Origin: Vitrella brassicaformis CCMP3155
Lineage: Eukaryota; Protista; Chromerida
NCBI GenBank assembly: GCA_001179505.1
Contig: CDMY01000273.1
Span: 76,567 to 140,566 of the forward strand
DNA: 64,000 nt
Direction: 5' to 3'
A model generated the notes under the pieces. The model did no database searches. It was not told the DNA's origin and worked only from the letters and a program-made list of their open reading frames with translations. Positions within the stretch are counted from its first letter, which is position 1. Every line of letters starts with the position of its first letter. Position numbers and translations under genes: made by a program. Shown piece by piece: positions 42,427 through 58,300 of this stretch.

Positions 42427-44938
42427 CTAGTAGAGTGCCGTCTTCTCCTTGACGAATGTCCGCCTCGCCTCGACATCAGACGGATCGTACGGATACATGC
42501 TCCGAGGGTAGTACCTGCCAGCCAGCCAGCCGCCCTCGGGTGTGGTGTGAAGGGTATTATTCGTGCTCACCTCTCTGATTTTGTGTCCCCGTGAGCATAG
42601 TCAAATCGCCCCTCCTCCAGCTGGTACGCCACATACGAGTTCCTGTGGCCGAACTTGACAACCGCACCGAGAATCCGAAAGGGATTCCCTTTCTGTGCAT
42701 CGACAGGCACACACACAGGGGGAGGCAGGCTCTCTGTAATGTTGGTGTGGTCTCCTGGATGAGTGTCGGTATACCTCGGGCGTGATCGTTCTGAAGACAA
42801 AGATGTCGTCGAATGACTTGGCAAAGTCCAAACGCTCCTGCCTGCCGGTGGTCCCCATCATGCCATCGGGGCTAGGGACGTCCTGATCGATACACACAAA
42901 CGGACGGACGATGCGCTGCCCTTTTCCTTGCCGCATCCCCGCTCGCAGGCAATGGCGTACCCGCAGCCTTGGATTCAGCATTATAAAGGGGCGTGCACCC
43001 ACTGCCTCCTGCATCTCATCCAGCACCTCAACGATCGGGGTGCTCTTCTGCAATGCATTACACGCAGACACCCATGTGGACGCACAAGAGGGCATGGAAG
43101 CTTGTTGTGCTCACGGCGGTTTGCGGGCAGAAGACGATGAAGATGTCGTCGTCATCCTCCACAAACTGAGGTCCCACGCCGCCGAATCGCACCTTCCCAT
43201 CTAACCTGAACACACACGAGGCCACTGAGCTGGGGTCATGTGTTTGGCCTCCATCCCTCACCTTGGTGGGAGGCTCTCTGCTGCGACGACCTCACTGAGC
43301 GACTTGAGGCCTCGTGCGGGGATGGGCTCCTCACGCTGCAGCCGCATCAACAGTGCACACACCACATGTAGGCCAATCCGGGCATACAAAGATCGTGTGT
43401 GTCGTGGTGTGTGCGTGCCTACAGGTTGGTATGGCTCTGAACCATCACCCCTGTAAGAGGAAATGGAGAGAATGGATGGGTGTACACTAGCTGGACGCTT
43501 ATTTGGTCTGAAGAACATCTTCCGCACCAGTCCATCATACCGAACATCTTCCGCACCCCGGCCAACGGCAGAGGGGTGCCCTGACGAAAGCCTATCTCCA
43601 CCGCACCCTGAAACAGCCAAAGCGGCGGACGCAGACACACACAAAGGATTCAATGCATTCATCTGCCTCGCCAGCTGTATACCTACCTGTATGCAAATCT
43701 TGACATTTCGTCCGGTCTCCTTGACGACGTACAGGGCGACCTCCCTGACCAGCTCCATCAGTGTGGCCACGCGGTACGTGTCAATAGTTGGATTGGTCTC
43801 GGGCACATTGATCCGCAGTCGCATCTTCGACGACGCGTAGTCGCGATCGATCACGGCCTGGTGAACAGCAAAGGCGGCGCTGCGATAGAACCACTCACTG
43901 CGACACATACAGACAGACACCAATGCAGGGAAGACAGGCGTAGCTCGTATCTCGTTTGCACACCGGACGGCTTGACTCATTGGTACGCTGTTCACCTGCA
44001 CACACACAGACGTGTACGCAGCGATGCCCCATTTCTCCGTCTGAGTGTGTCTGTTTGTCTGACATTGAGGCCCATTGGCAGCTCCTGAGATGACCCGATG
44101 GGGATGGCCATCAAACTGCCATCAAGAACAGGCACAAGACAACGAATGAATACGACACAATGATCACCTCACTCGCAGCTGCGTGCATGGATGTACCTCG
44201 CGATGCTCTTGGCGCGATCGGCCCTCCTGCTGAGCGCCATCAACGCCTGCTTCAACCCATCAACTGCACACCAAATCCACGCAATCAGCCACAAGAGCAT
44301 CCAAAGGCTTCGGCGTGAGCTCACCAGTGGTCACTCGTCCATCGAAAGGGATGGCGACCGTCTCTAGAGTGGTCTTCTTGTCGCTGCCGAACAGCTTCCT
44401 CTCAGTGATGGTCAGGTTGACAATGGCCTCGTCCTCAGTCATATCCACCAGGAGCGCATCGTCGATGACAAACAGACCAGCTTGCCAGAAATTCGCCTTG
44501 GTCATCCGCTCCTTGATGTCCGCGTCAAGACGAGAAGCATACGCAACCAAATCATCCTAAGAAACAAGCAAAGCAAGCAGAACGACCAATGAGGGAAGCA
44601 AACACAGCCAATCAACAAACAAGCATCATGCAGCTTCTTTCACAGTGACTGCGCACCTTGTGTTTGGTGTTCATGTACTCAAGTAGAGTGGATCTGTCCT
44701 TCTCGTTGAGCTGCAGCGATTGCCTGAACGTCCCCGCATAGAACGGCGAGGATGAAGCTGCACCGATCTTTGTCCTGGCGCCACGCCGCCGCAAGATCAG
44801 CCCTGAGGCATGAGTAAGTCTCCATTGCGGCACAGAGAAGCAACCAGCCAGCGCAGCACAGCTGCAGAGGGTGCTGAGCCACACAAGACTAACTCTGCAG
44901 CTCTGTTGGCCCTTCGCAATGAGTCCGCTTCGTCGCAT
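42427..44938 (-). CDS. Probably plastid-targeted DUF2470-like + DUF1995 protein (C-terminal domain like that of plant chloroplast adenylate kinase 5)
   Basis: RINVPETNPTIDTYRVATLMELVREVAL, VKICIQ, PLPLAGVRKMFGMMDW, DDDDIFIVFCPQ, RPFIMLNPRL, DVPSPDGMMGTTGRQERLDFAKSF; N-domain LEYMNTKHK-DDLVAYA; signal-like N-terminus CAALAGC-F. Confidence 0.8.
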
Positions 44939-45325: not shown

Positions 45326-48300
45326 ATGGCGTGCGAGGTGCTGTCGATGATCGGCAGCTTCGACGAGCTCTCAGATGTACAGCCGGTGGTGAGCAAACAC
45401 ACAGCCCTGCTCGGGTTACAAAGATGGCTGCATGCGTGTGGGTGCGCATCTGCTGCGCTGTGTGTTGTGTGGGTGTCGATATTATGTCAGGGCGGCTGTC
45501 ACTGTGGAGGCGTGCATCTGCCTATCGGTGCTGTGTCTTGCCATCATGACCACCATCCATCGGAGGAGCAGCGCAAGGAATGGGTACCGCGCCCAGACGC
45601 ACACACACACACAAGGCACCCACACACACTCGATAGATGCCCTTATCTGTGTGGCAGGGTCGTTTAAACGACGAGGGTCGCGTAGATTGGTGTTCGCGTG
45701 AGGGCAAGTGGAATGTGCACGCCGCCGCATCGATGAACTACCAGGTCGCCATGAGCCCTACGCTGTTCGATGTCGACGACGGCACGTTCGCGAGCCACTA
45801 CAGCAAAACAAAGAGGTGCGTATGAGCGGATGGGATGGCTGGCGTGTCCTGTGTGAATGCGCTGGGTTGGGTGCGTGTTTATGGTCGCCTGTGCAGGTGT
45901 TTGGCGTTTGTGGATTCGTTTGTGTGGAGCGAGTACGGCGACCGGCTGCGGACCTACTTCAACACGTACGAGATCAACGCCCACTTCGTGCCCATCAACA
46001 TACCAGAGGAACAGAAAACTCTCGCGGTGAGTCCGCAGACCCACTCACACAAGTGGATAGATACACCACACACGGACGAATGGCTGCCCTNNNNNNNNNN
46101 NNNNNNNNNNNNNNNNNNNNNNNNNNNNNNNNNNNNNNNNNNNNNNNNNNNNNNNNNNNNNNNNNNNNNNNNNNNNNNNNNNNNNNNNNNNNNNNNNNNN
46201 NNNNNNNNNNNNNNNNNNNNNNNNNNNNNNNNNNNNNNNNNNNNNNNNNNNNNNNNNNNNNNNNNNNNNNNNNNNNNNNNNNNNNNNNNNNNNNNNNNNN
46301 NNNNNNNNNNNNNNNNNNNNNNNNNNNNNNNNNNNNNNNNNNNNNNNNNNNNNNNNNNNNNNNNNNNNNNNNNNNNNNNNNNNNNNNNNNCCGCACCGCA
46401 TCGGGGGCTACCGCTTCCGCACCGACATCACCTTCGACGAGCTGGTCGACGTCTGCGGCGAGTACGCACGGGTGATGACTGTGCGGGTCGAGAAGCTCAT
46501 CTGCGACGCGCCCGCGACGCTGCGGCTCCTGCCGCCCGTCACCGATAGCGATAGAAAGGAATGGGTGAGTGAGCTAACACAGACAGGCACAGAGAGAGTC
46601 GTGGGTCGTGTCTGGTGGCTCATTTATGTGGTGTTGTGTGTGTGTGTGTGTGGATGGGTGTGCAGAGGTTGAAGAACGACGACGGTCGTGTGGAATGGGA
46701 GGCGTGTTACGGCACCTGGTCGGTGGTGGCGAGCCAGCGCATGGACTACGAGGTCACCATGCGCCCGGGGCTGTTCGACCCGGCAGACGACGCACTCGCA
46801 CAGTTCTACGCCAAAACCAAGAGGTGAATGACCGCCTCCACAGGCATCCACGGACGAGTGTGTGTGTGTGAGTGGATGTGTGTGTGTCTGGATGTGCAGG
46901 TGTCTAGCGTACGTTGACCCGTTGGTGTGGCAGGAGTATGGCCATCACATCAAGGCCTACTTCGAGGCGCACAACATCGCAGCTCGGTTCGTACCGTGCG
47001 CTGCACCGGAGGAGAACAAAAACCTTGAGGTACGCCTGAGATACAAACACACACAGAAGGCCCTTTGACACATTGTCCCATGTGTGTGCGCGTGTGTGTG
47101 TGTGTGTGTGTCAGTTGCTGGCTGCCGGTGCGCAAGCCATAGTCGATTTCGGTTTGGATCGTCGGCACGAGCCTGTCTTGGCCATCGGCGGCGGTGTGCT
47201 GATGGACGTGGTGAGTTTGCTGTCGTCTCTGTACAAGCGCAGGGTGCCCTTCATCCGCATCCCCACCACTTTCCTCGGCATCGTCGACGCGTCCATCGGC
47301 GTCAAGACGGGCGTCAACTTCGGCAAAAACAAAAACATGCTCGGCACCTACACGCCGCCCAAGGCCGTCTACATCGACACGGCCTTCCTCCGCACAGTTC
47401 CCGCACTCCACATCAGAAACGGACTCTGCGAGATCATGAAAATGGCCCTCATGCGTGACAACGAGCTCTTCGCACTGCTGGAGGTACACGGGCGGCACAT
47501 CCACGCACGGCTTGCCTGTGTTGACACATCCTTCTATCTGTGTGTATGTCCCGATATCTGTGTGTATGTCCCGCGTGCCTGTCTGGTTTAGGATTTTGGT
47601 GAGCGTTTGATCGAGACGCGTTTCGGGCACTACACGGGCGGCGTGGGGGCGACGATGCCGGCTGCCGAGCTGTCGCAGGTGTGGGAGGCCGGCCAGGAGG
47701 TGATCCGCAGAGCCATCCACACGATGCTCGAGGAACTCTCCTGCAACCTCACCGAACAAAACCTATACCGGTAAGCCAAACACAGACATTCGCAGAGCCA
47801 GCACACACAGCTGTACATAAAGCCTTCCGTTTGTCTGTGTGTGTGAATGTCAGTTGCGTTGATTTCGGTCACATCTGGGGCCCCGCTGTGGAGCTGGCGG
47901 CCTCCCCGCCCATCCCCCATGGGTTTGCGGTCAACCAGGACATGGCCTACTGCGTGTACCTGAGCTACCGGGGCGGGTCGCTCACATGGGAGGAGGCGTG
48001 CCGCGTATGGCACTGCATGGACCGCCTGGGCCTGCCGCGCAGCCACACCTACTACCTCGACCCCTCCCTGATGCACCCCACGCTCATGAAGATGCAGAAG
48101 ACCCAGGCCGGCATGCACAGGGTGCCCATCCCGCACCGCATCGGGGGCTACCGCTTCCGCACCGACATCACCTTCGACGAGCTGGTCGACGTCTGCGGCG
48201 AGTACGCACGGGTGATGACTGTGCGGGTCGAGAAGCTCATCTGCGACGCGCCCGCGACGCTGCGGCTCCTGCCGCCCGTCACCGATAGCGATAGAAAGGA

Positions 48301-51043
48301 ATGGGTGAGTGAGCTAACACAGACAGGCACAGAGAGAGTCGTGGGTCGTGTCTGGTGGCTCATTTATGTGGTGTTGTGTGTGTGTGTGTGTGGATGGGTG
48401 TGCAGAGGTTGAAGAACGACGACGGTCGTGTGGAATGGGAGGCGTGTTACGGCACCTGGTCGGTGGTGGCGAGCCAGCGCATGGACTACGAGGTCACCAT
48501 GCGCCCGGGGCTGTTCGACCCGGCAGACGACGCACTCGCACAGTTCTACGCCAAAACCAAGAGGTGAATGACCGCCTCCACAGGCATCCACGGACGAGTG
48601 TGTGTGTGTGAGTGGATGTGTGTGTGTCTGGATGTGCAGGTGTCTAGCGTACGTTGACCCGTTGGTGTGGCAGGAGTATGGCCATCACATCAAGGCCTAC
48701 TTCGAGGCGCACAACATCGCAGCTCGGTTCGTACCGTGCGCTGCACCGGAGGAGAACAAAAACCTTGAGGTACGCCTGAGATACAAACACACACAGAAGG
48801 CCCTTTGACACATTGTCCCATGTGTGTGCGCGTGTGTGTGTGTGTGTGTGTCAGTTGCTGGCTGCCGGTGCGCAAGCCATAGTCGATTTCGGTTTGGATC
48901 GTCGGCACGAGCCCGTGTTGGCCATCGGCGGCGGTGTGCTGATGGACGTGGTGAGTTTGCTGTCGTCTCTGTACAAGCGCAGGGTGCCCTTCATCCGCAT
49001 CCCCACCACTCTCCTCGGCATCGTCGACGCGTCCATCGGCGTCAAGACGGGCGTCAACTTCGGCAAAAACAAAAACATGCTCGGCACCTACACGCCGCCC
49101 AAGGCCGTTTACATCGACACGGCCTTCCTCCGCACAGTTCCCGCACTCCACATCAGAAACGGACTCTGCGAGATCATGAAAATGGCGCTGGTGAAGGACT
49201 ACAAGCTCTTCACACTCCTCGAGGTCAGTCGAGCGACCTTAGCACCCCACAGCCCCCCATGTCCGCGCCGTTGTCAATTGTGCTGGTTGTGTTCTCTCAG
49301 GAGTTCGGTGAGTCGCTGATTGAGACGCGTTTCGGCCATCTGAGTCACGGCGACTACCGCTCGTCGGAGCTCAAGGATCTCCGCGAGGTGGGCCAGGAGG
49401 TGATCCGCAGAGCCATCCACACGATGCTCGAGGAACTCTCGTACAACCTCACCGAACAAAACCTGTACCGGTAAGCAAAACAGACAGAGAGAGCGAGAGA
49501 GAGAGAGAGGGGCACCTGCACCATCTGCTTATCTGTTTTTGTATTGGCCAGGTGCGTCGATTTCGGTCACATCTGGGGCCCGACCGTCGAGTTGTCGTCA
49601 TCGCCGCCGCTCCCCCACGGGTTCGCCGTCAACATGGACATGGCCTACTGTGCATACCTCTCCTACACCAAAGGCACCATGAGCTGGGAGGAGGCCCAGC
49701 GCGTGTGGGACTGCATGGACCGCCTGGGCCTCCCCCGCAAGCACCCCTACTTTATCGACCCGGCCCGCATGCACCCCACGCTCATGAAGATGCAGAAGAC
49801 CCAGGCCGGCATGCACAGGGTGCCGGTGCCTCTGGGTATTGGGCAGTACACCTTCCGCACCGACATCACGGCCGACGAGCTGAGAGAGGTGTGCCAGCAG
49901 TACGGTCAGGTGCTCATCATGGCCCCCGACGCGCCCACGCGGTCGCCCACGGCATCCCTGCGGTCGGGCAGCACACTCGCCGAGTCGGGCAGCGCTGGAT
50001 CGTCCCCCAGCAGCCGGCTGGCGACCCCTGCTGCTGGCGGGCTGGGGGCCACTCACCTGGTCAAGATGGGCGCCCGCGTGCATGCGACAGGGACAGGCGC
50101 TGAGGAGAGTGCGCAGCAGCCCGACACACTCATGGTGAGGAGGGGAGAGGCAGAGAGAGGGTGGGAGATGGTGGGTGAGATGGTGGGTGAGATGGTGGGT
50201 GAGATTGTGTGTGTGTGTGTGTGTGTGCGCAGGAGGTGATAGCTGATTACATGCGCAAGATAGTCAAGGCGACCAACATTGACGACGTCAAGACGTGGGC
50301 CAAGCAGGCACTGGAGCTGGTAGCAGGCATGGAGCCCCACATCGAGGCATCTTCCACTCAGGTACGCAACGAACGTCCCTCTCACCCACAGTACAACCAA
50401 CATACCAAAACGGCTGTCTGATCTGTGGGGGCTTCCTTGTGTGGATGTGATGTGTGCAGGTGTCTGATGTAGCTCGGAAGTGTCACGACGCCGCCTTTGC
50501 TGAGAACTGGGCGGAGTTGTATGCCAAGGGGGTCACCAAGAAGCGCCTCAAGAAGGAGATGGTCACCAACATACTCGAGGGCAAGGTGTGTGGGTGGGTG
50601 GGTGCGACACATGTGATTGCACGCTTTCCCGGGCTGCTGATTTTGTTGGTGGTGTTGTGCTCTCATCATCTCAGGTGTTGAATCTCTTTTGCCGCATGGT
50701 TGGCGCTCGTCGCGTGTTGGAGATCGGCATGTTCACCGGCTTCGCCACCATCTCCATGGCCGAGGCACTCCCAAATGACGGCACAGGTATGCCCTGCACA
50801 CACACACACACAGCATCTGTCCATCCATCCATCCATCCATACCTCATACTTGTCTGTGGACTGACTGTGCAGTGATCACGTTGGAGGACGAGCCGTACCT
50901 TATGGGCCTGACCAAGAAGCACTTCCAGGAGTCTCCGCACGGACAGAGAATCAGAATTGAACTGGGAGACGCTGAAACCAACCTCAAGTGAGTGTCAGCA
51001 ACGACCACCAGCGAACACACACACACATGACCCTACTGTCGCC

Positions 51044-51080
<37 letters not shown>

Positions 51081-52126
51081 TGTGTTCGTGTCTGTGTTGG
51101 TTCAGACGGCTGAAGGCCAACGGCCCGGAGGACCAATTCGACTTCGTCTTCATAGGTAGAACGAGCCACACCACAGCCCTCTTTGTCGCACATGCATCAA
51201 AAAGTGTGTGTGTGTGTGTGTGTGTTGGCCCGTGCCATCAGACGCGGACATTCAGAAGTACGGCGTGTATTTCGACACCATCATGAAGCGCGGCCTGCTC
51301 AAACCGGGGGGCGTCATCGCACTCGACAACTCGCTGCTCAAGGGACACGTTTACACCAACCTCAAACAGGCCAAGGAGGTAACCCTCACCCTACCCCTCC
51401 CACCCTACACACTCACACACACACACACACACAGCCGTGTTGCGTACACGTCCTTTCCTCTACTGGTCTTTCTGTTATCTCACTTAGGGACTGGCACGCA
51501 CCAAGGCGAGTGACCTGGCCGATGCGGCAGCCATCCGTCGGTTCAACGTCCGGGTGTCGAGCGACCCGCGATTCGAGTGCGTCCTCCTGCCCATCCGCAA
51601 CGGCCTCACCCTCCTCCGCCACAAGCCCCAGGCATTCTCACCCAACCTCAGGGCATCCCTCGACGTCCCACTCGCCATGTTCACCACCATGCCCGTCCCC
51701 GCCGCCCCTCAGACACAGCCACAGATACAGCAGGTGCCCACGGCCACCCTGGCCAACAATAACAGCAGCACCGACGCGGGGGCGACGCACGACGCCATCA
51801 AGCGGCTGTACTACCAGCTGCTGCTGCAGCACGCCCAGTGCAGCTACAAGCTCTACCCTCACCCTGAGAACCCCGCACCGGGCGAGTCGCCGCTGGTCTG
51901 CGGCCCCGGCGCGATGCCGCTGCTGGTGGCCGGCATGGGGATGGGCGTGACCGCACTGGCGGGGGCGGGCGCTGGCGTTTCCCGCACCGACTCGCCCTTC
52001 ACCAAGAAGTCGGTCGACTACGCCAGCCTGGACCTCATGGCGGGGGGCGGGGGGTGCGGGGAGAAGCTGGCCTCGGGGCTCCTCACGCCACCTGTCGTGG
52101 AGCTGGCGCGACACAGAACAGGATAG
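45326..52126 (+). CDS. Tandem sedoheptulose-7-phosphate cyclase (DHQS-like: EEVS/DDGS) domains fused to a MysB-type O-methyltransferase; interrupted by a gap
   Basis: Cyclase motifs IGGGVLMDVV..YKRR.PFIRIPTT.LGIVDASIGVKTGVNF, GLCEIMKMAL, MLEEL..NL.E, DFGHIWGP and PHGFAVN.DMA occur twice; a third, divergent N-half lies at 45660-46030. OMT: LVAGMEPHIEASST..ENWAELY..KEMVTNILEG..RVLEIGMFTGF, FDFVFIDAD, GGVIALDN, LLPIRNGLTLLR. Confidence 0.9.
46091..46390. other. Assembly gap (300 N placeholder) inside the cyclase gene
   Basis: Run of 300 N. Confidence 0.99.
46391..49186 (+). repeat. Near-identical direct duplication, 46391-47446 = 48131-49186 (offset 1740 bp)
   Basis: Exons and introns identical apart from a few substitutions (e.g. 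cctgtcttg/cccgtgttg, actttcctc/actctcctc); copies diverge after aaaatggc. Confidence 0.95.
50165..50200. repeat. 12-bp tandem repeat (gagatggtgggt)x3 in an intron
   Basis: Directly visible. Confidence 0.9.
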
Positions 52127-55309: not shown

Positions 55310-58300
55310 CAGTTGGGTGAGCGTCGGTGGTGAGCGTTGCCGAGCCCCACCGACCTACCGCGGACCGTGCATCAGAGAGGCCGACTTCACTGGTCAGTCA
55401 GTGGCCACACAAACACGACACAGACAAGCGACACGATGGCTGCATCCAATTGTCTGTGGATGTGTCAGGGCACGACGAGCGGCTGAAGGCCGTGTGGGCG
55501 CCTGAGTGCGGTGTGTCCTGGCCGTGCCGCGTCGCGTGTGAGCCAGACTTGTCGATCATGTGTCCGCTGGGGTGGGCCGAGGTCAACGACACCCACTGCA
55601 CCGCACCGGCCTACTACCGCGGCCGGTGCGGCGCCACACAGCCGGTCGGCCTGCTGAGCGATGAGAAGAAGCGCATCTTCATGCACGCGTGTGAGGTGGA
55701 GTGGCGATGCGACGACAGACAACACATGGACCTCACACACAAATGGTAAACCATCCTCGGATGCACCGAAAGGGACACACACAGTGAGTGATTGTGTGTG
55801 TCTACCTGATGCAGTCCTCTCGGCTGGCCGTCTGCCAGTGACAGTACGGCCGCATGCACAGCCCCGCCTCACTACCAAGGCCCCTGTCCATCCACACTCA
55901 TCACCGCCGACGTCGACCAAGTGGGCCACCGCACCACTGGCTCATTCGTATGCGTCGAGCCCCTAATTTGTGTGACAATTTCTTGCAGGAGGGCAAGTAT
56001 CGTCTGGCTGTCCGCTGTCACCTCATGTGGCCCCCGAGGGCAGCGTGCGACTACGACTTCACTGCCGAGTGTCCGCTGGGAATGGCGAAAGCCCCGCGGC
56101 GGGTCCCTCCTCTCCTCGCCCACAGACACCGACTACAGCGGCCCGTGCGCCACACGCGTCGACTTCTCGTCCTTCACCGCTCACATGAAGGCGGCGTGGG
56201 CGGCCGCGTGCAACGCCCCGTTCCCTTGTCGCGCCTTCATCCCTCCCAAGCCATCCAAGCGGCCGGCCCGCCCTGTCACCACCCGCGTGGGCCTTCCAGA
56301 CATCGACGGACCCATCCGTGCATCCGACGGCGCCATCATACCACCAAATGTGAGCAGCGTGCCACCTCAGCTGCCGAGCGAGGGCGACTACGATGCCGCG
56401 ACTTTGGCGGCCAGCGAAGAGCGGATCGAACAGCTGGCGAAGGCAGAGGCCGCCTACCGCCACACCGACCCCGCATTGGCCCGTGACATCAGGAATGTGA
56501 GAATGCTCATTCAGAATCGGGGGAGTGCGGCCGTGTTGCATCGCTTCAGAGAGGTCAGCGGCCTGCTGCCTGTCGGGCGAGAGGGCCCACTGACCAGAGA
56601 GAACTGGCGCGCCGACAGACTGCTGCCCGGCCTGCCGCACATCGGCTTCGATGCCTTCGTTGGACGCGTGTACCCATTCGTAAGCAAATGCAGCAGAGAG
56701 GCCACACACCCCCACTCATGTGTGTGTCTCTCTGTGCGTGTCGCTTGTGTGTGCAGCGCACAATGGTCGATGCGGCGTTGGTGTCTCAGCGCGACAGCCA
56801 GCGGAGCGTAATGGACCTGTATGATGGCCAGGGCAGCTCACCCATCTGCACACAGGACTTCACGCAGCTGTGCCCGATCGGTTGGGAGAAGATCAGCCCG
56901 TCGCTGTGCCGCGCGCCCGACACTTATTCGCTCGTCGGCCCGTGTCCGCGCGTCCACAGCTTCGCCGACCTGTCCTACAGGTACACACAGAGACACACAT
57001 GGATGAGGGGGACACCACGAGATGTCTTTCTGTGTGTGTGTGTGTGTTGTGCAGAGAGAAGGAGGAGTACGCCGTCAAGTGCGATGTCCGATGGCCTTGC
57101 AAGGTCAGACAACACATACACGAGACGGACGCCAACTAACTAATCCACACATTTGGCGTCGTGTGTGTGTGACTCCATCCATCAGTCCACAGAAGTGCTA
57201 CCGCTCCTACACGGAGCCTTGTCCAGCCGGCTGGCGCGACGTGGGCGGCGGCTACTGCAGAGCACCAAAGGCATACACCGACACGAACGGCAGATGCAAG
57301 ACCCTCATCAGCTTCGCATACGCCGACCAGACAACGAGACGTCTGTGGGCACAGGTGCGGATGTCTCTCCGTGCGCATGTGTGTGTGTGTATCTCTCTCT
57401 CTCTCTCTGTCTCTGTGTGTGAGTGAATCTGGTAGGACTGTGGCGCCGACTGGCCATGTCAGGAGCAGTGTGAGCCGGACCTCGCGGCAGCTTGTCCCCT
57501 CGGCTGGACNNNNNNNNNNNNNNNNNNNNNNNNNNNNNNNNNNNNNNNNNNNNNNNNNNNNNNNNNNNNNNNNNNNNNNNNNNNNNNNNNNNNNNNNNNN
57601 NNNNNNNNNNNNNNNNNNNNNNNNNNNNNNNNNNNNNNNNNNNNNNNNNNNNNNNNNNNNNNNNNNNNNNNNNNNNNNNNNNNNNNNNNNNNNNNNNNNN
57701 NNNNNNNNNNNNNNNNNNNNNNNNNNNNNNNNNNNNNNNNNNNNNNNNNNNNNNNNNNNNNNNNNNNNNNNNNNNNNNNNNNNNNNNNNNNNNNNNNNNN
57801 NNNNNNNNNCCACCTCAGCTGCCGAGCGAGGGCGACTACGATGCCGCGACTTTGGCGGCCAGCGAAGAGCGGATCGAACAGCTGGCGAAGGCAGAGGCCG
57901 CCTACCGCCACACCGACCCCGCATTGGCCCGAGATCTCAGGAACGTGAGAATGCTCATTCAGAATCGGGGGAGTGCGGCAGTGTTGCATCGCTTCAGAGA
58001 GGTCAGCGGCCTGCTGCCTGTCGGGCGAGAGGGCCCACTGACCAGAGAGAACTGGCGCGCCGACAGACTGCTGCCCGGCCTGCCGCACATCGGCTTCGAT
58101 GCCTTCGGGACGCGTGTACCCATTCGTAAGGCCGCCACACCCACACACCCCCACTCATGTGTGTGTCTCTCTGTGCGTGTCGCTTGTGTGTGCAGCGCAC
58201 AAAGGTCGATGCGGCGTTGGTGTCTCAGCGCGACAGCCAGCGGAGCGTAATGGACCTGTATGATGGCCAGGGCAGCTCACCCATCTGCACACAGGACTTC

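Follow-up and report, generated by a model that had tools for sequence, protein, structure and literature searches.

What does a cyclase make when its active site combines the diagnostic residues of two different sunscreen enzymes? The question is raised by a gene in a 64,000-nucleotide stretch of the genome of Vitrella brassicaformis CCMP3155 (contig CDMY01000273.1, positions 76,567 to 140,566), referred to here as the window, which encodes tandem cyclase units followed by an O-methyltransferase (OMT). It is still unsettled which residues make a cyclase of sedoheptulose 7-phosphate (SH7P) stop at 2-epi-5-epi-valiolone, as the synthase named for that compound (EEVS) does, or proceed to desmethyl-4-deoxygadusol, as in desmethyl-4-deoxygadusol synthase (DDGS, or MysA). 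The locus provides a natural, expressed gene whose place in the tree is between both families and whose active sites carry diagnostic residues of each, in an organism that also carries both kinds of downstream partner.

Judged by their sequences, the Vitrella domains are a lineage not described before, branching at the base of the DDGS clade. The reading that we favor, with somewhat less than even confidence, is that they are an SH7P cyclase variant with EEVS-type chemistry feeding a gadusol/mycosporine pathway.

Active sites and family position of the cyclases

The cyclase units, here called units 2 and 3, lie on the forward strand at 46666–48304 and 48406–50134, the second span including a Ser/Ala/Gly-rich linker. 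Each is complete, at about 400 amino acids, with strong matches to PF01761 and PF24621, and each is divided into five exons, a to e (46666–46823, 46900–47029, 47115–47483, 47592–47770, and 47854–48304 in unit 2; 48406–48563, 48640–48769, 48855–49223, 49301–49470, and 49552–50134 in unit 3). Database searches were made exon by exon, and alignments and trees used the spliced (joined) protein models. The motifs from which the first-pass annotation deduced a hybrid fingerprint sit where it had placed them in both units: GGGVLMD (47187–47207 and 48927–48947), KNKNMLG (47325–47345 and 49065–49085), GLCEIMK (47421–47441 and 49161–49181), TMLEEL (47721–47738 and 49421–49438), DFGHIWGP (47861–47884 and 49559–49582), PHGFAV (47915–47932 and 49613–49630), and KTQAG (48098–48112 and 49796–49810). 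The metal ligands (Glu, His, and His, at 49170–49172, 49568–49570, and 49616–49618 in unit 3) and the GGG loop for NAD are intact, as had also been noted, the ligand columns being conserved in both units. Likewise intact in the alignment are the equivalents of Asp146, Lys152, Asn162, and Lys197 of 3-dehydroquinate synthase (DHQS).

According to a review, exactly three active-site residues differ between the EEVS and MysA structures, His360, Asp281, and Leu267 in the former versus Thr347, Ala268, and Glu254 in the latter, and the Asp281/Ala268 and Leu267/Glu254 pairs were confirmed as important by mutagenesis (PMC10666671). Two of these positions we mapped by aligning exon e, with HMMER, to solved structures of ValA, an EEVS, and of DDGS, in which chain numbers are offset from residue numbers by tags of 6 and 34 residues, respectively. 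ValA was the best solved-structure match, at 146.8 versus 104 bits for exon c (E 2.5e-43) and 69 versus 60 bits for exon e. The Asp of DFGH aligns with ValA chain residue 287 (Asp281) and DDGS chain residue 302 (Ala268), and the Thr of KTQAG with ValA chain residue 366 (His360) and DDGS chain residue 381 (Thr347). The final Leu of MLEEL stands exactly 14 residues ahead of the Asp, the spacing that separates Leu267 from Asp281 in ValA and Glu254 from Ala268 in DDGS, and its column in the alignment is consistent with this; as a search of solved structures with the short exon d gave no match, the Leu267 assignment rests on this fixed spacing together with the multiple alignment.

The triad reads Leu-Asp-Thr in both units (47736–47738, 47861–47863, and 48101–48103 in unit 2; 49436–49438, 49559–49561, and 49799–49801 in unit 3). 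It is EEVS-type at the two sites tested by mutagenesis and DDGS-type at the third, matching two of the three sites of the EEVS triad Leu267/Asp281/His360 and departing from the DDGS triad Glu254/Ala268/Thr347 at its Leu and Asp. Around the third site, ValA has K-H-R-D-G, DDGS has L-T-R-D-G, and the window has K-T-Q-A-G. The structure alignment bears out the earlier observation of Thr at the position of the EEVS His, followed by loss of Arg-Asp, here replaced by Gln-Ala. The hybrid fingerprint is a real mosaic, present in both domains. Chance does not account for it, given the strong Pfam matches, ValA as the best solved-structure match, the splice joints in two RNA-type runs, and an environmental contig, described below, that retains every motif.

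A table of 21 pocket and neighboring positions in 73 homologues and Escherichia coli AroB extends the picture. The Trp of GHxW is shared with DDGS, EEVS having Phe, and so the original description of DFGHIWGP as EEVS-like holds for its Asp and fails for its Trp; the motif is itself mixed. The residue after the metal His-Gly is Phe in the window, Glu in EEVS, and His in DDGS, with Phe found elsewhere only in two homologues (P0149 and P0128). Immediately before the metal Glu the window has Cys, where the others have Ala (59), Gly (8), or Ser (6), and its Gln-Ala occupies a position at which most homologues have Arg-Asp or Arg-Gly. The site equivalent to His360 holds His in 40 sequences, Thr in 8 (all cyanobacterial DDGS), Asn in 8, Phe in 7, Lys in 5, Leu in 2, and Gln and Gly in 1 each. 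It is very variable outside bacteria and vertebrates and, in protist cyclases, is the least constrained of the three (Phe, Asn, Lys, Leu, Gln, or Thr), so that one residue of DDGS type at this site argues only weakly for new chemistry.

KNMLG had been read as a DHQS-type signal. It carries none, because its Met column varies freely among homologues (Arg 34, Lys 15, Leu 13, Phe 4, and others), and the motif is therefore unremarkable. That this Met also occurs in E. coli AroB is one of two observations in favor of the domains being DHQS enzymes that act on 3-deoxy-D-arabino-heptulosonate 7-phosphate (DAHP). The other is that NCBIfam returned nothing except aroB-type partial matches, with no EEVS- or DDGS-specific model matched, but these scores fall far below the family cut-offs. 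The residues that bind the carboxylate and phosphate of DAHP in DHQS, in the numbering of the Aspergillus nidulans enzyme mapped via E. coli AroB, are Lys250, Arg264, Asn268, and His275; AroB has Lys, Arg, Asn, and His at the corresponding positions, and the window has Met, Tyr, Asp, and Pro. Such a pocket is of the SH7P type, which makes a switch of substrate to DAHP very unlikely. The trees described below place the units deep within the SH7P cyclases, and the other DHQS-type matches of the genome are on a different contig (C297). We consider the DHQS explanation scarcely credible and reject it on the pocket residues.

The family position of the units was examined in a tree of 76 domains, rooted on E. 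coli AroB (IQ-TREE, LG+C20+F+G4 by posterior mean site frequency). P0149, the window units, and canonical DDGS form a clade with support of 100/97. Within it, canonical DDGS (cyanobacterial sequences, P0126, and class 3 of the protist sequences below) is a 99/92 clade that excludes the window units, and a separate 99/92 clade of vertebrate, green-algal, and class 1 and 2 EEVS excludes them also. Their exclusion from the EEVS clade rests on branch support, and an approximately unbiased (AU) test did not reject the units and DDGS as one clade (p = 0.32). A quick tree of 121 rows agrees. The units stand on a long, isolated branch of 0.9–1.0 changes per site. P0149 reads Leu-Asp-His, which indicates that the base of the P0149/window/DDGS clade is EEVS-like. 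On this evidence the most apt description of the units is a lineage sister to DDGS or on its stem, one that retains the ancestral EEVS-type Leu and Asp, and the mosaic is largely explained by position in the family tree together with a hypervariable third site.

The marine protist cyclases, environmental or MMETSP sequences in a sampling without named dinoflagellate, cnidarian, fungal, or red-algal DDGS, fall into three classes, with Leu-Asp-Phe in class 1, Leu-Asp-Asn in class 2, and Glu-Ala-Lys in class 3. Many are fused to a Methyltransf_3 OMT, and some also to short-chain dehydrogenase/reductase (SDR), GFO/IDH/MocA, glutathione S-transferase (GST), aldose-epimerase, or xylose-isomerase-like domains. 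A large multidomain family of MMETSP dinoflagellate type (P0296, P0313, P0319–P0339, P0315, P0328, P0320, P0338, and P0377–P0416) fuses the Methyltransf_3 OMT variously with SH7P cyclases, SDR, GFO/IDH/MocA, GST, aldose epimerase, xylose-isomerase-like, and D-Ala-D-Ala-ligase domains. These proteins look like sunscreen-pathway polyproteins, and most are annotated as 3-dehydroquinate synthase or caffeoyl-CoA OMT. In the cyanobacterium Calothrix sp. NIES-4071 (locus L018, 4001–6249), the DDGS-clade cyclase P0245 adjoins a UbiA prenyltransferase rather than an OMT, and cyanobacterial "DDGS" is therefore not always in a mys cluster.

The fingerprint is also rare. When exon c was searched with HMMER against 1.84 billion representative proteins, no relative closer than 61–62% identity emerged. 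Homologous domains were gathered by this search and by another for OMT-cyclase fusions, giving 116 + 65 full-length cyclase domains; the combination of Asp and Thr is absent from all of them, and none has either KTQAG or a Cys before the metal Glu. Ala268 is present in 13 of 13 DDGS-clade rows and Glu254 in 12 of 13, where the window has Asp and Leu, which places the fingerprint outside canonical DDGS diversity. A word-based protein search with exon e, whose length limits exclude full-length relatives, returned one protein, an environmental fragment 98% identical. No relative was found among the JGI metagenome contigs scanned with an exon-e alignment, and the ESM Atlas yielded nothing beyond generic DHQS_C clusters. 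The one near relative found is a contig of environmental origin, k147_1055246 of ENA ERZ893784 (locus L001), which is 91–96% identical in DNA and keeps all of the motifs and the cyclase-to-OMT order. The contig is an inverted chimera, bases 56–701 being the reverse of window 48839–49482 and bases 730–2472 running forward from 49463. A close relative of Vitrella is present in the ERZ893784 sample.

Partner genes and the predicted product

What the cyclases are likely to make depends also on the enzymes around them. The OMT that follows unit 3 belongs to Methyltransf_3 (its exons match PF01596) and is 38% identical to Nostoc MysB; it scores 153.6 bits against MysB and 113 bits or less against any protist OMT. 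In the OMT tree it pairs with a methyltransferase domain encoded elsewhere in the same genome (51% identity, support 94/84), apart from a protist OMT clade with 100/100 support. That domain is part of a gene of MT-Ox type on the reverse strand of contig C364, at about 70242–72630, with Methyltransf_3 exons followed by adh_short exons (loci L012 and L024). The gene is collinear with residues 28–521 of Pycnococcus MT-Ox, at 36–72% identity per segment, and is likely to be the gadusol-forming partner of the cyclase. In two green algae the gene adjoining EEVS combines Methyltransf_3 with adh_short, and MT-Ox therefore shares the family of MysB and is set apart by an SDR domain. No such domain accompanies the window OMT, which so lacks the MT-Ox architecture.

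The first-pass annotation had taken the fused partner as MysB-type and not MT-Ox. That argument was incomplete: Methyltransf_3 is common to both, an MT-Ox orthologue exists on C364, and the fused OMT is nearest to its methyltransferase domain. As a clean distinction, MysB-type versus MT-Ox was dropped.

A third partner is a MysC-like ATP-grasp gene on the forward strand of contig C908 (176145–178253; loci L008–L011 and L016), which covers residues 76–465 of Nostoc MysC at 24–59% identity per tblastn segment. MysD was not found in the genome with a Nostoc query. Neither the MT-Ox gene nor the MysC-like gene is linked to the cyclase locus, the pathway genes being spread over three contigs. The assembly searched comprises 72,700,666 bases in 1064 contigs, and in it no other EEVS- or DDGS-like (SH7P) cyclase was found, the remaining DHQS-family matches being confined to C297.

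EEVS-type chemistry is favored because the two experimentally supported sites are EEVS-type, the base of the clade is EEVS-like, an MT-Ox gene is present, and the locus is the sole possible source of substrate for it. Fusions of an EEVS-clade cyclase to a Methyltransf_3 OMT, in which Phe or Asn occupies the His360 site, are moreover common in marine protists. In the proposed pathway, both predicted cyclases would convert SH7P to 2-epi-5-epi-valiolone or a close isomer, the MT-Ox orthologue would convert this product to gadusol, and the MysC-like ligase would yield a gadusol-core mycosporine. The fused OMT, which is paralogous to the methyltransferase domain of MT-Ox, would supply an O-methylation step or share in one. 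We infer substrate, product, and the role of the fused OMT from sequence.

Several observations weigh against this assignment. In the tree, the units lie closer to DDGS than to any proven EEVS. Masking the 12 fingerprint columns leaves them with the DDGS clade at weaker support: 89/52 for the units and canonical DDGS, 85/70 with P0149 added, and 90/95 with P0010 added. The long branch makes their placement uncertain. DDGS-like features are the Thr at the Thr347 site, the Trp in GHxW, and the absence of the Glu that in EEVS follows the metal His-Gly, and a cyclase fused straight to a plain OMT follows the DDGS-MysB pattern. The Cys before the metal Glu, the Phe after His-Gly, and the replacement of Arg-Asp by Gln-Ala could alter the chemistry unpredictably, and co-function of the unlinked MT-Ox and MysC-like genes with the cyclase is assumed.

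The main rival reading has functional DDGS enzymes of the MysA type reaching desmethyl-4-deoxygadusol with different residues. The fused OMT would serve as MysB and yield 4-deoxygadusol, the MysC-like ligase would next produce mycosporine-glycine, and MT-Ox would have some other role. The sister or stem position, with one clade left standing by the AU test, the Thr and the Trp, the direct fusion to an OMT that scores higher against Nostoc MysB than against any protist OMT, and the presence of a MysC-like gene all point that way. The domains, however, lack Glu254 and Ala268, the residues whose importance mutagenesis confirmed (PMC10666671), the second of them invariant among the sampled DDGS-clade proteins; the fused OMT groups with the methyltransferase domain of the genome's own MT-Ox and not with MysB; and the MT-Ox gene would be left without a known source of substrate. 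We regard this alternative as rather unlikely, if a serious one.

A new cyclase subtype, as first proposed for this locus, would make a different C7-cyclitol (another epimer of valiolone or a dehydrated form), or a mixture of 2-epi-5-epi-valiolone and desmethyl-4-deoxygadusol, and so feed both the fused OMT and MT-Ox. A new or dual product is conceivable because the residues beside the metal site are unique: their combination with the His360-site residue recurs in none of the 116 + 65 homologous domains. The long, isolated branch, the distance of the nearest exon-c relative, and the occurrence of both partner types in one genome with a single cyclase locus add to the case. Nothing points positively to a particular new product, however; family members with other residues at the His360 site are simply uncharacterized, and most of the pocket is the standard SH7P set. 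Of the original proposal, the mosaic stands as a fingerprint not seen elsewhere, and the domains form a long branch of their own. The different substrate is unlikely, the SH7P-type pocket being intact (Met at Lys250, Pro at His275, and no Arg at Arg264). We consider a new subtype quite unlikely overall.

Because the active sites mix residues of both sunscreen cyclases, they look like a natural intermediate. In its strongest form this idea would make the Vitrella didomain cyclase a living EEVS/DDGS intermediate that yields 2-epi-5-epi-valiolone along with desmethyl-4-deoxygadusol, or else a new cyclitol, and supplies a fused-OMT branch toward 4-deoxygadusol-type compounds and an MT-Ox branch toward gadusol. 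We judge it decidedly improbable.

Gene model, copy number, and expression

The DNA of the window is eukaryotic in style, with genes split by short (about 80–110 nucleotides), canonical GT-AG introns rich in (TG)n. In the exon models, all borders are AG/GT and all junctions are in frame. The predicted start of the gene is an ATG at 45326, followed on the forward strand by putative leader exons at 45326–45388 and 45491–45583 with GT-AG borders read from the sequence. The predicted N-terminal leader (45326–45583) resembles the C-terminal tail of a cyclase unit with its linker (FDEL...RKEW), and the 5' end of the gene looks like another product of the tandem duplication behind the cyclase units. 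Next come two divergent N-terminal cyclase exons on the same strand, a1 (45658–45815) and b1 (45897–46026), which have GT-AG borders, are in frame, and are about 55% identical to exons a and b of the other units. These are followed by an assembly gap of 300 N (46091–46390) and, to its right, by a 724-bp forward-strand segment (46391–47114) that in the assembly supplies unit 2 with the linker and its exons a and b.

Downstream of unit 3, the Methyltransf_3 domain and a tail of about 170 amino acids occupy 50233–52126 on the forward strand (exons 50233–50361, 50460–50585, 50675–50786, 50873–50987, 51106–51155, 51242–51378, and 51488–52126); the tail has no match in Pfam. As read from the sequence, unit 2 continues in frame into unit 3 (...RKEW / RLKNDD...), and unit 3 into the OMT (...DTLM / EVIADY...), in each case through a GT-AG intron, and from this we infer that the tandem cyclases and the OMT form a single polypeptide across the unit junctions.

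Four sequencing runs were compared with the model, two of DNA (X1 and X2) and two that behave as RNA (X10 and X12). Contigs from X10 and X12 skip five predicted introns with GT..AG ends, and contigs from X1 and X2 do not, from which it follows that the locus is transcribed and spliced as modeled. The introns confirmed are 47771–47853 in unit 2 (spliced contigs of X10 and X12), 49224–49300 in unit 3 (X10), and three in the OMT. No RNA contig bridges either the unit 2-unit 3 or the unit 3-OMT junction. Within the intron between unit 3 and the OMT, at 50164, the X1 and X2 contigs carry an additional 12-nucleotide repeat unit (GAGATGGTGGGT) relative to the assembly, which is minisatellite length variation.

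The number of units has to be read with some care. Positions 46391–47114 are 100% identical to 48131–48854, two exact copies in the assembly, yet this 724-bp repeat has single-copy depth in the DNA runs (19.6 in X1 and 15 in X2). For exon c the depth in X1 is roughly twice as high (41.9), and the genome contains only two copies of it. Scaffolding or gap filling probably duplicated the segment at 46391–47114, giving the gene a phantom half-unit. A three-unit polyprotein is accordingly disfavored, and the gene likely contains two cyclase units, one being [a1 b1 c d2 e2] and the other [a b c d3 e3], the fill at the gap being a duplicate. On the two-unit reading, the phrase "both domains" in the first-pass annotation was apt.

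The probable assembly duplicate beside the gap, together with a difference of about 11–12% in protein between the units, invites the suspicion that one of the domains, or both, may be catalytically dead or a decaying duplicate, or that the duplication is itself an artefact of assembly, and that the odd residues are functionally meaningless. The units are 87.6% identical in DNA and about 88–89% in protein. Exons c to e, however, differ at 143 nucleotides, with a dN/dS of about 0.37 overall and about 0.32 in each part, and all catalytic and ligand residues are kept in both units. Unit-specific sequence has normal single-copy depth in the two DNA runs, spliced RNA contigs exist for both units, and the environmental relative retains all of the motifs. 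The dS values are uneven, at 0.086 in exon c versus 0.66 in exons d and e, a pattern that suggests gene conversion on the 5' side together with purifying selection on both copies. We therefore hold decay or artefact to be very improbable.

Of the open frames nearby, those at 55921–56811 (forward strand) and 42601–43095 (reverse strand) encode CPW_WPC (apicomplexan-type) and DUF1995 domains, respectively, with no obvious connection to a sunscreen pathway.

Comparison with known systems

The Vitrella cyclase is well-suited to a direct test of the three-residue rule as a predictor of product. If our preferred reading is true, a gadusol or mycosporine sunscreen pathway would be placed in the photosynthetic relatives of apicomplexan parasites. 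The variability of the His360 site makes it unreliable as a classifier of protist cyclases, which bears on the annotation of the many marine sequences labeled 3-dehydroquinate synthase.

With EEVS, as represented by ValA, the window units share the fold, the NAD loop, the metal ligands, the SH7P-type pocket, MLEEL, and the equivalents of Leu267 and Asp281, and the Vitrella genome holds the MT-Ox partner gene. They differ in having Thr in place of His360, Gln-Ala in place of Arg-Asp, Trp in place of the Phe of GHxF, Phe where EEVS has the Glu that follows the metal His-Gly, and a Cys preceding the metal Glu. They also lie outside every EEVS clade in the trees and are arranged in tandem and fused to an OMT. 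DDGS (MysA; Ava_3858, PDB 5TPR) belongs to the nearest clade and shares the Thr347 equivalent and the Trp of GHxW, and the physical coupling of the cyclase to a Methyltransf_3 OMT, along with a MysC-like ligase in the genome, is a further likeness. In contrast to DDGS, the window has Leu and Asp in place of Glu254 and Ala268 and MLEEL in place of MLELE, and its units fall outside the 99/92 canonical clade.

A fusion of 3-dehydroquinate synthase and OMT has been reported from dinoflagellates (PMC6001144). This fusion and the marine protist ones of dinoflagellate type found here (P0296, P0319, and P0377, for example) resemble the Vitrella protein in being alveolate SH7P-type cyclases covalently joined to a Methyltransf_3 OMT, with a residue other than His at the His360 site (Phe, Asn, or Lys). 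They have an N-terminal OMT and one cyclase, whereas the window encodes tandem cyclases and a C-terminal OMT. Of their cyclases, classes 1 and 2 fall in the EEVS clade of vertebrate type and class 3 inside canonical DDGS, apart from the window units, and their OMTs form the separate 100/100 clade.

A parallel in gene content is the proposed "mosaic" sunscreen neighborhood of green algae, in which EEVS, MT-Ox, a MysC-like ATP-grasp enzyme, and an extra OMT occur together (Foflonker and Blaby-Haas 2020, PMC7826186). All four enzyme types, cyclase, MT-Ox, MysC-like ligase, and additional OMT, are found in the Vitrella genome. There, however, the genes lie on three different contigs, the additional OMT is joined to the cyclase, and the cyclase itself stands outside the vertebrate/green-algal EEVS clade.

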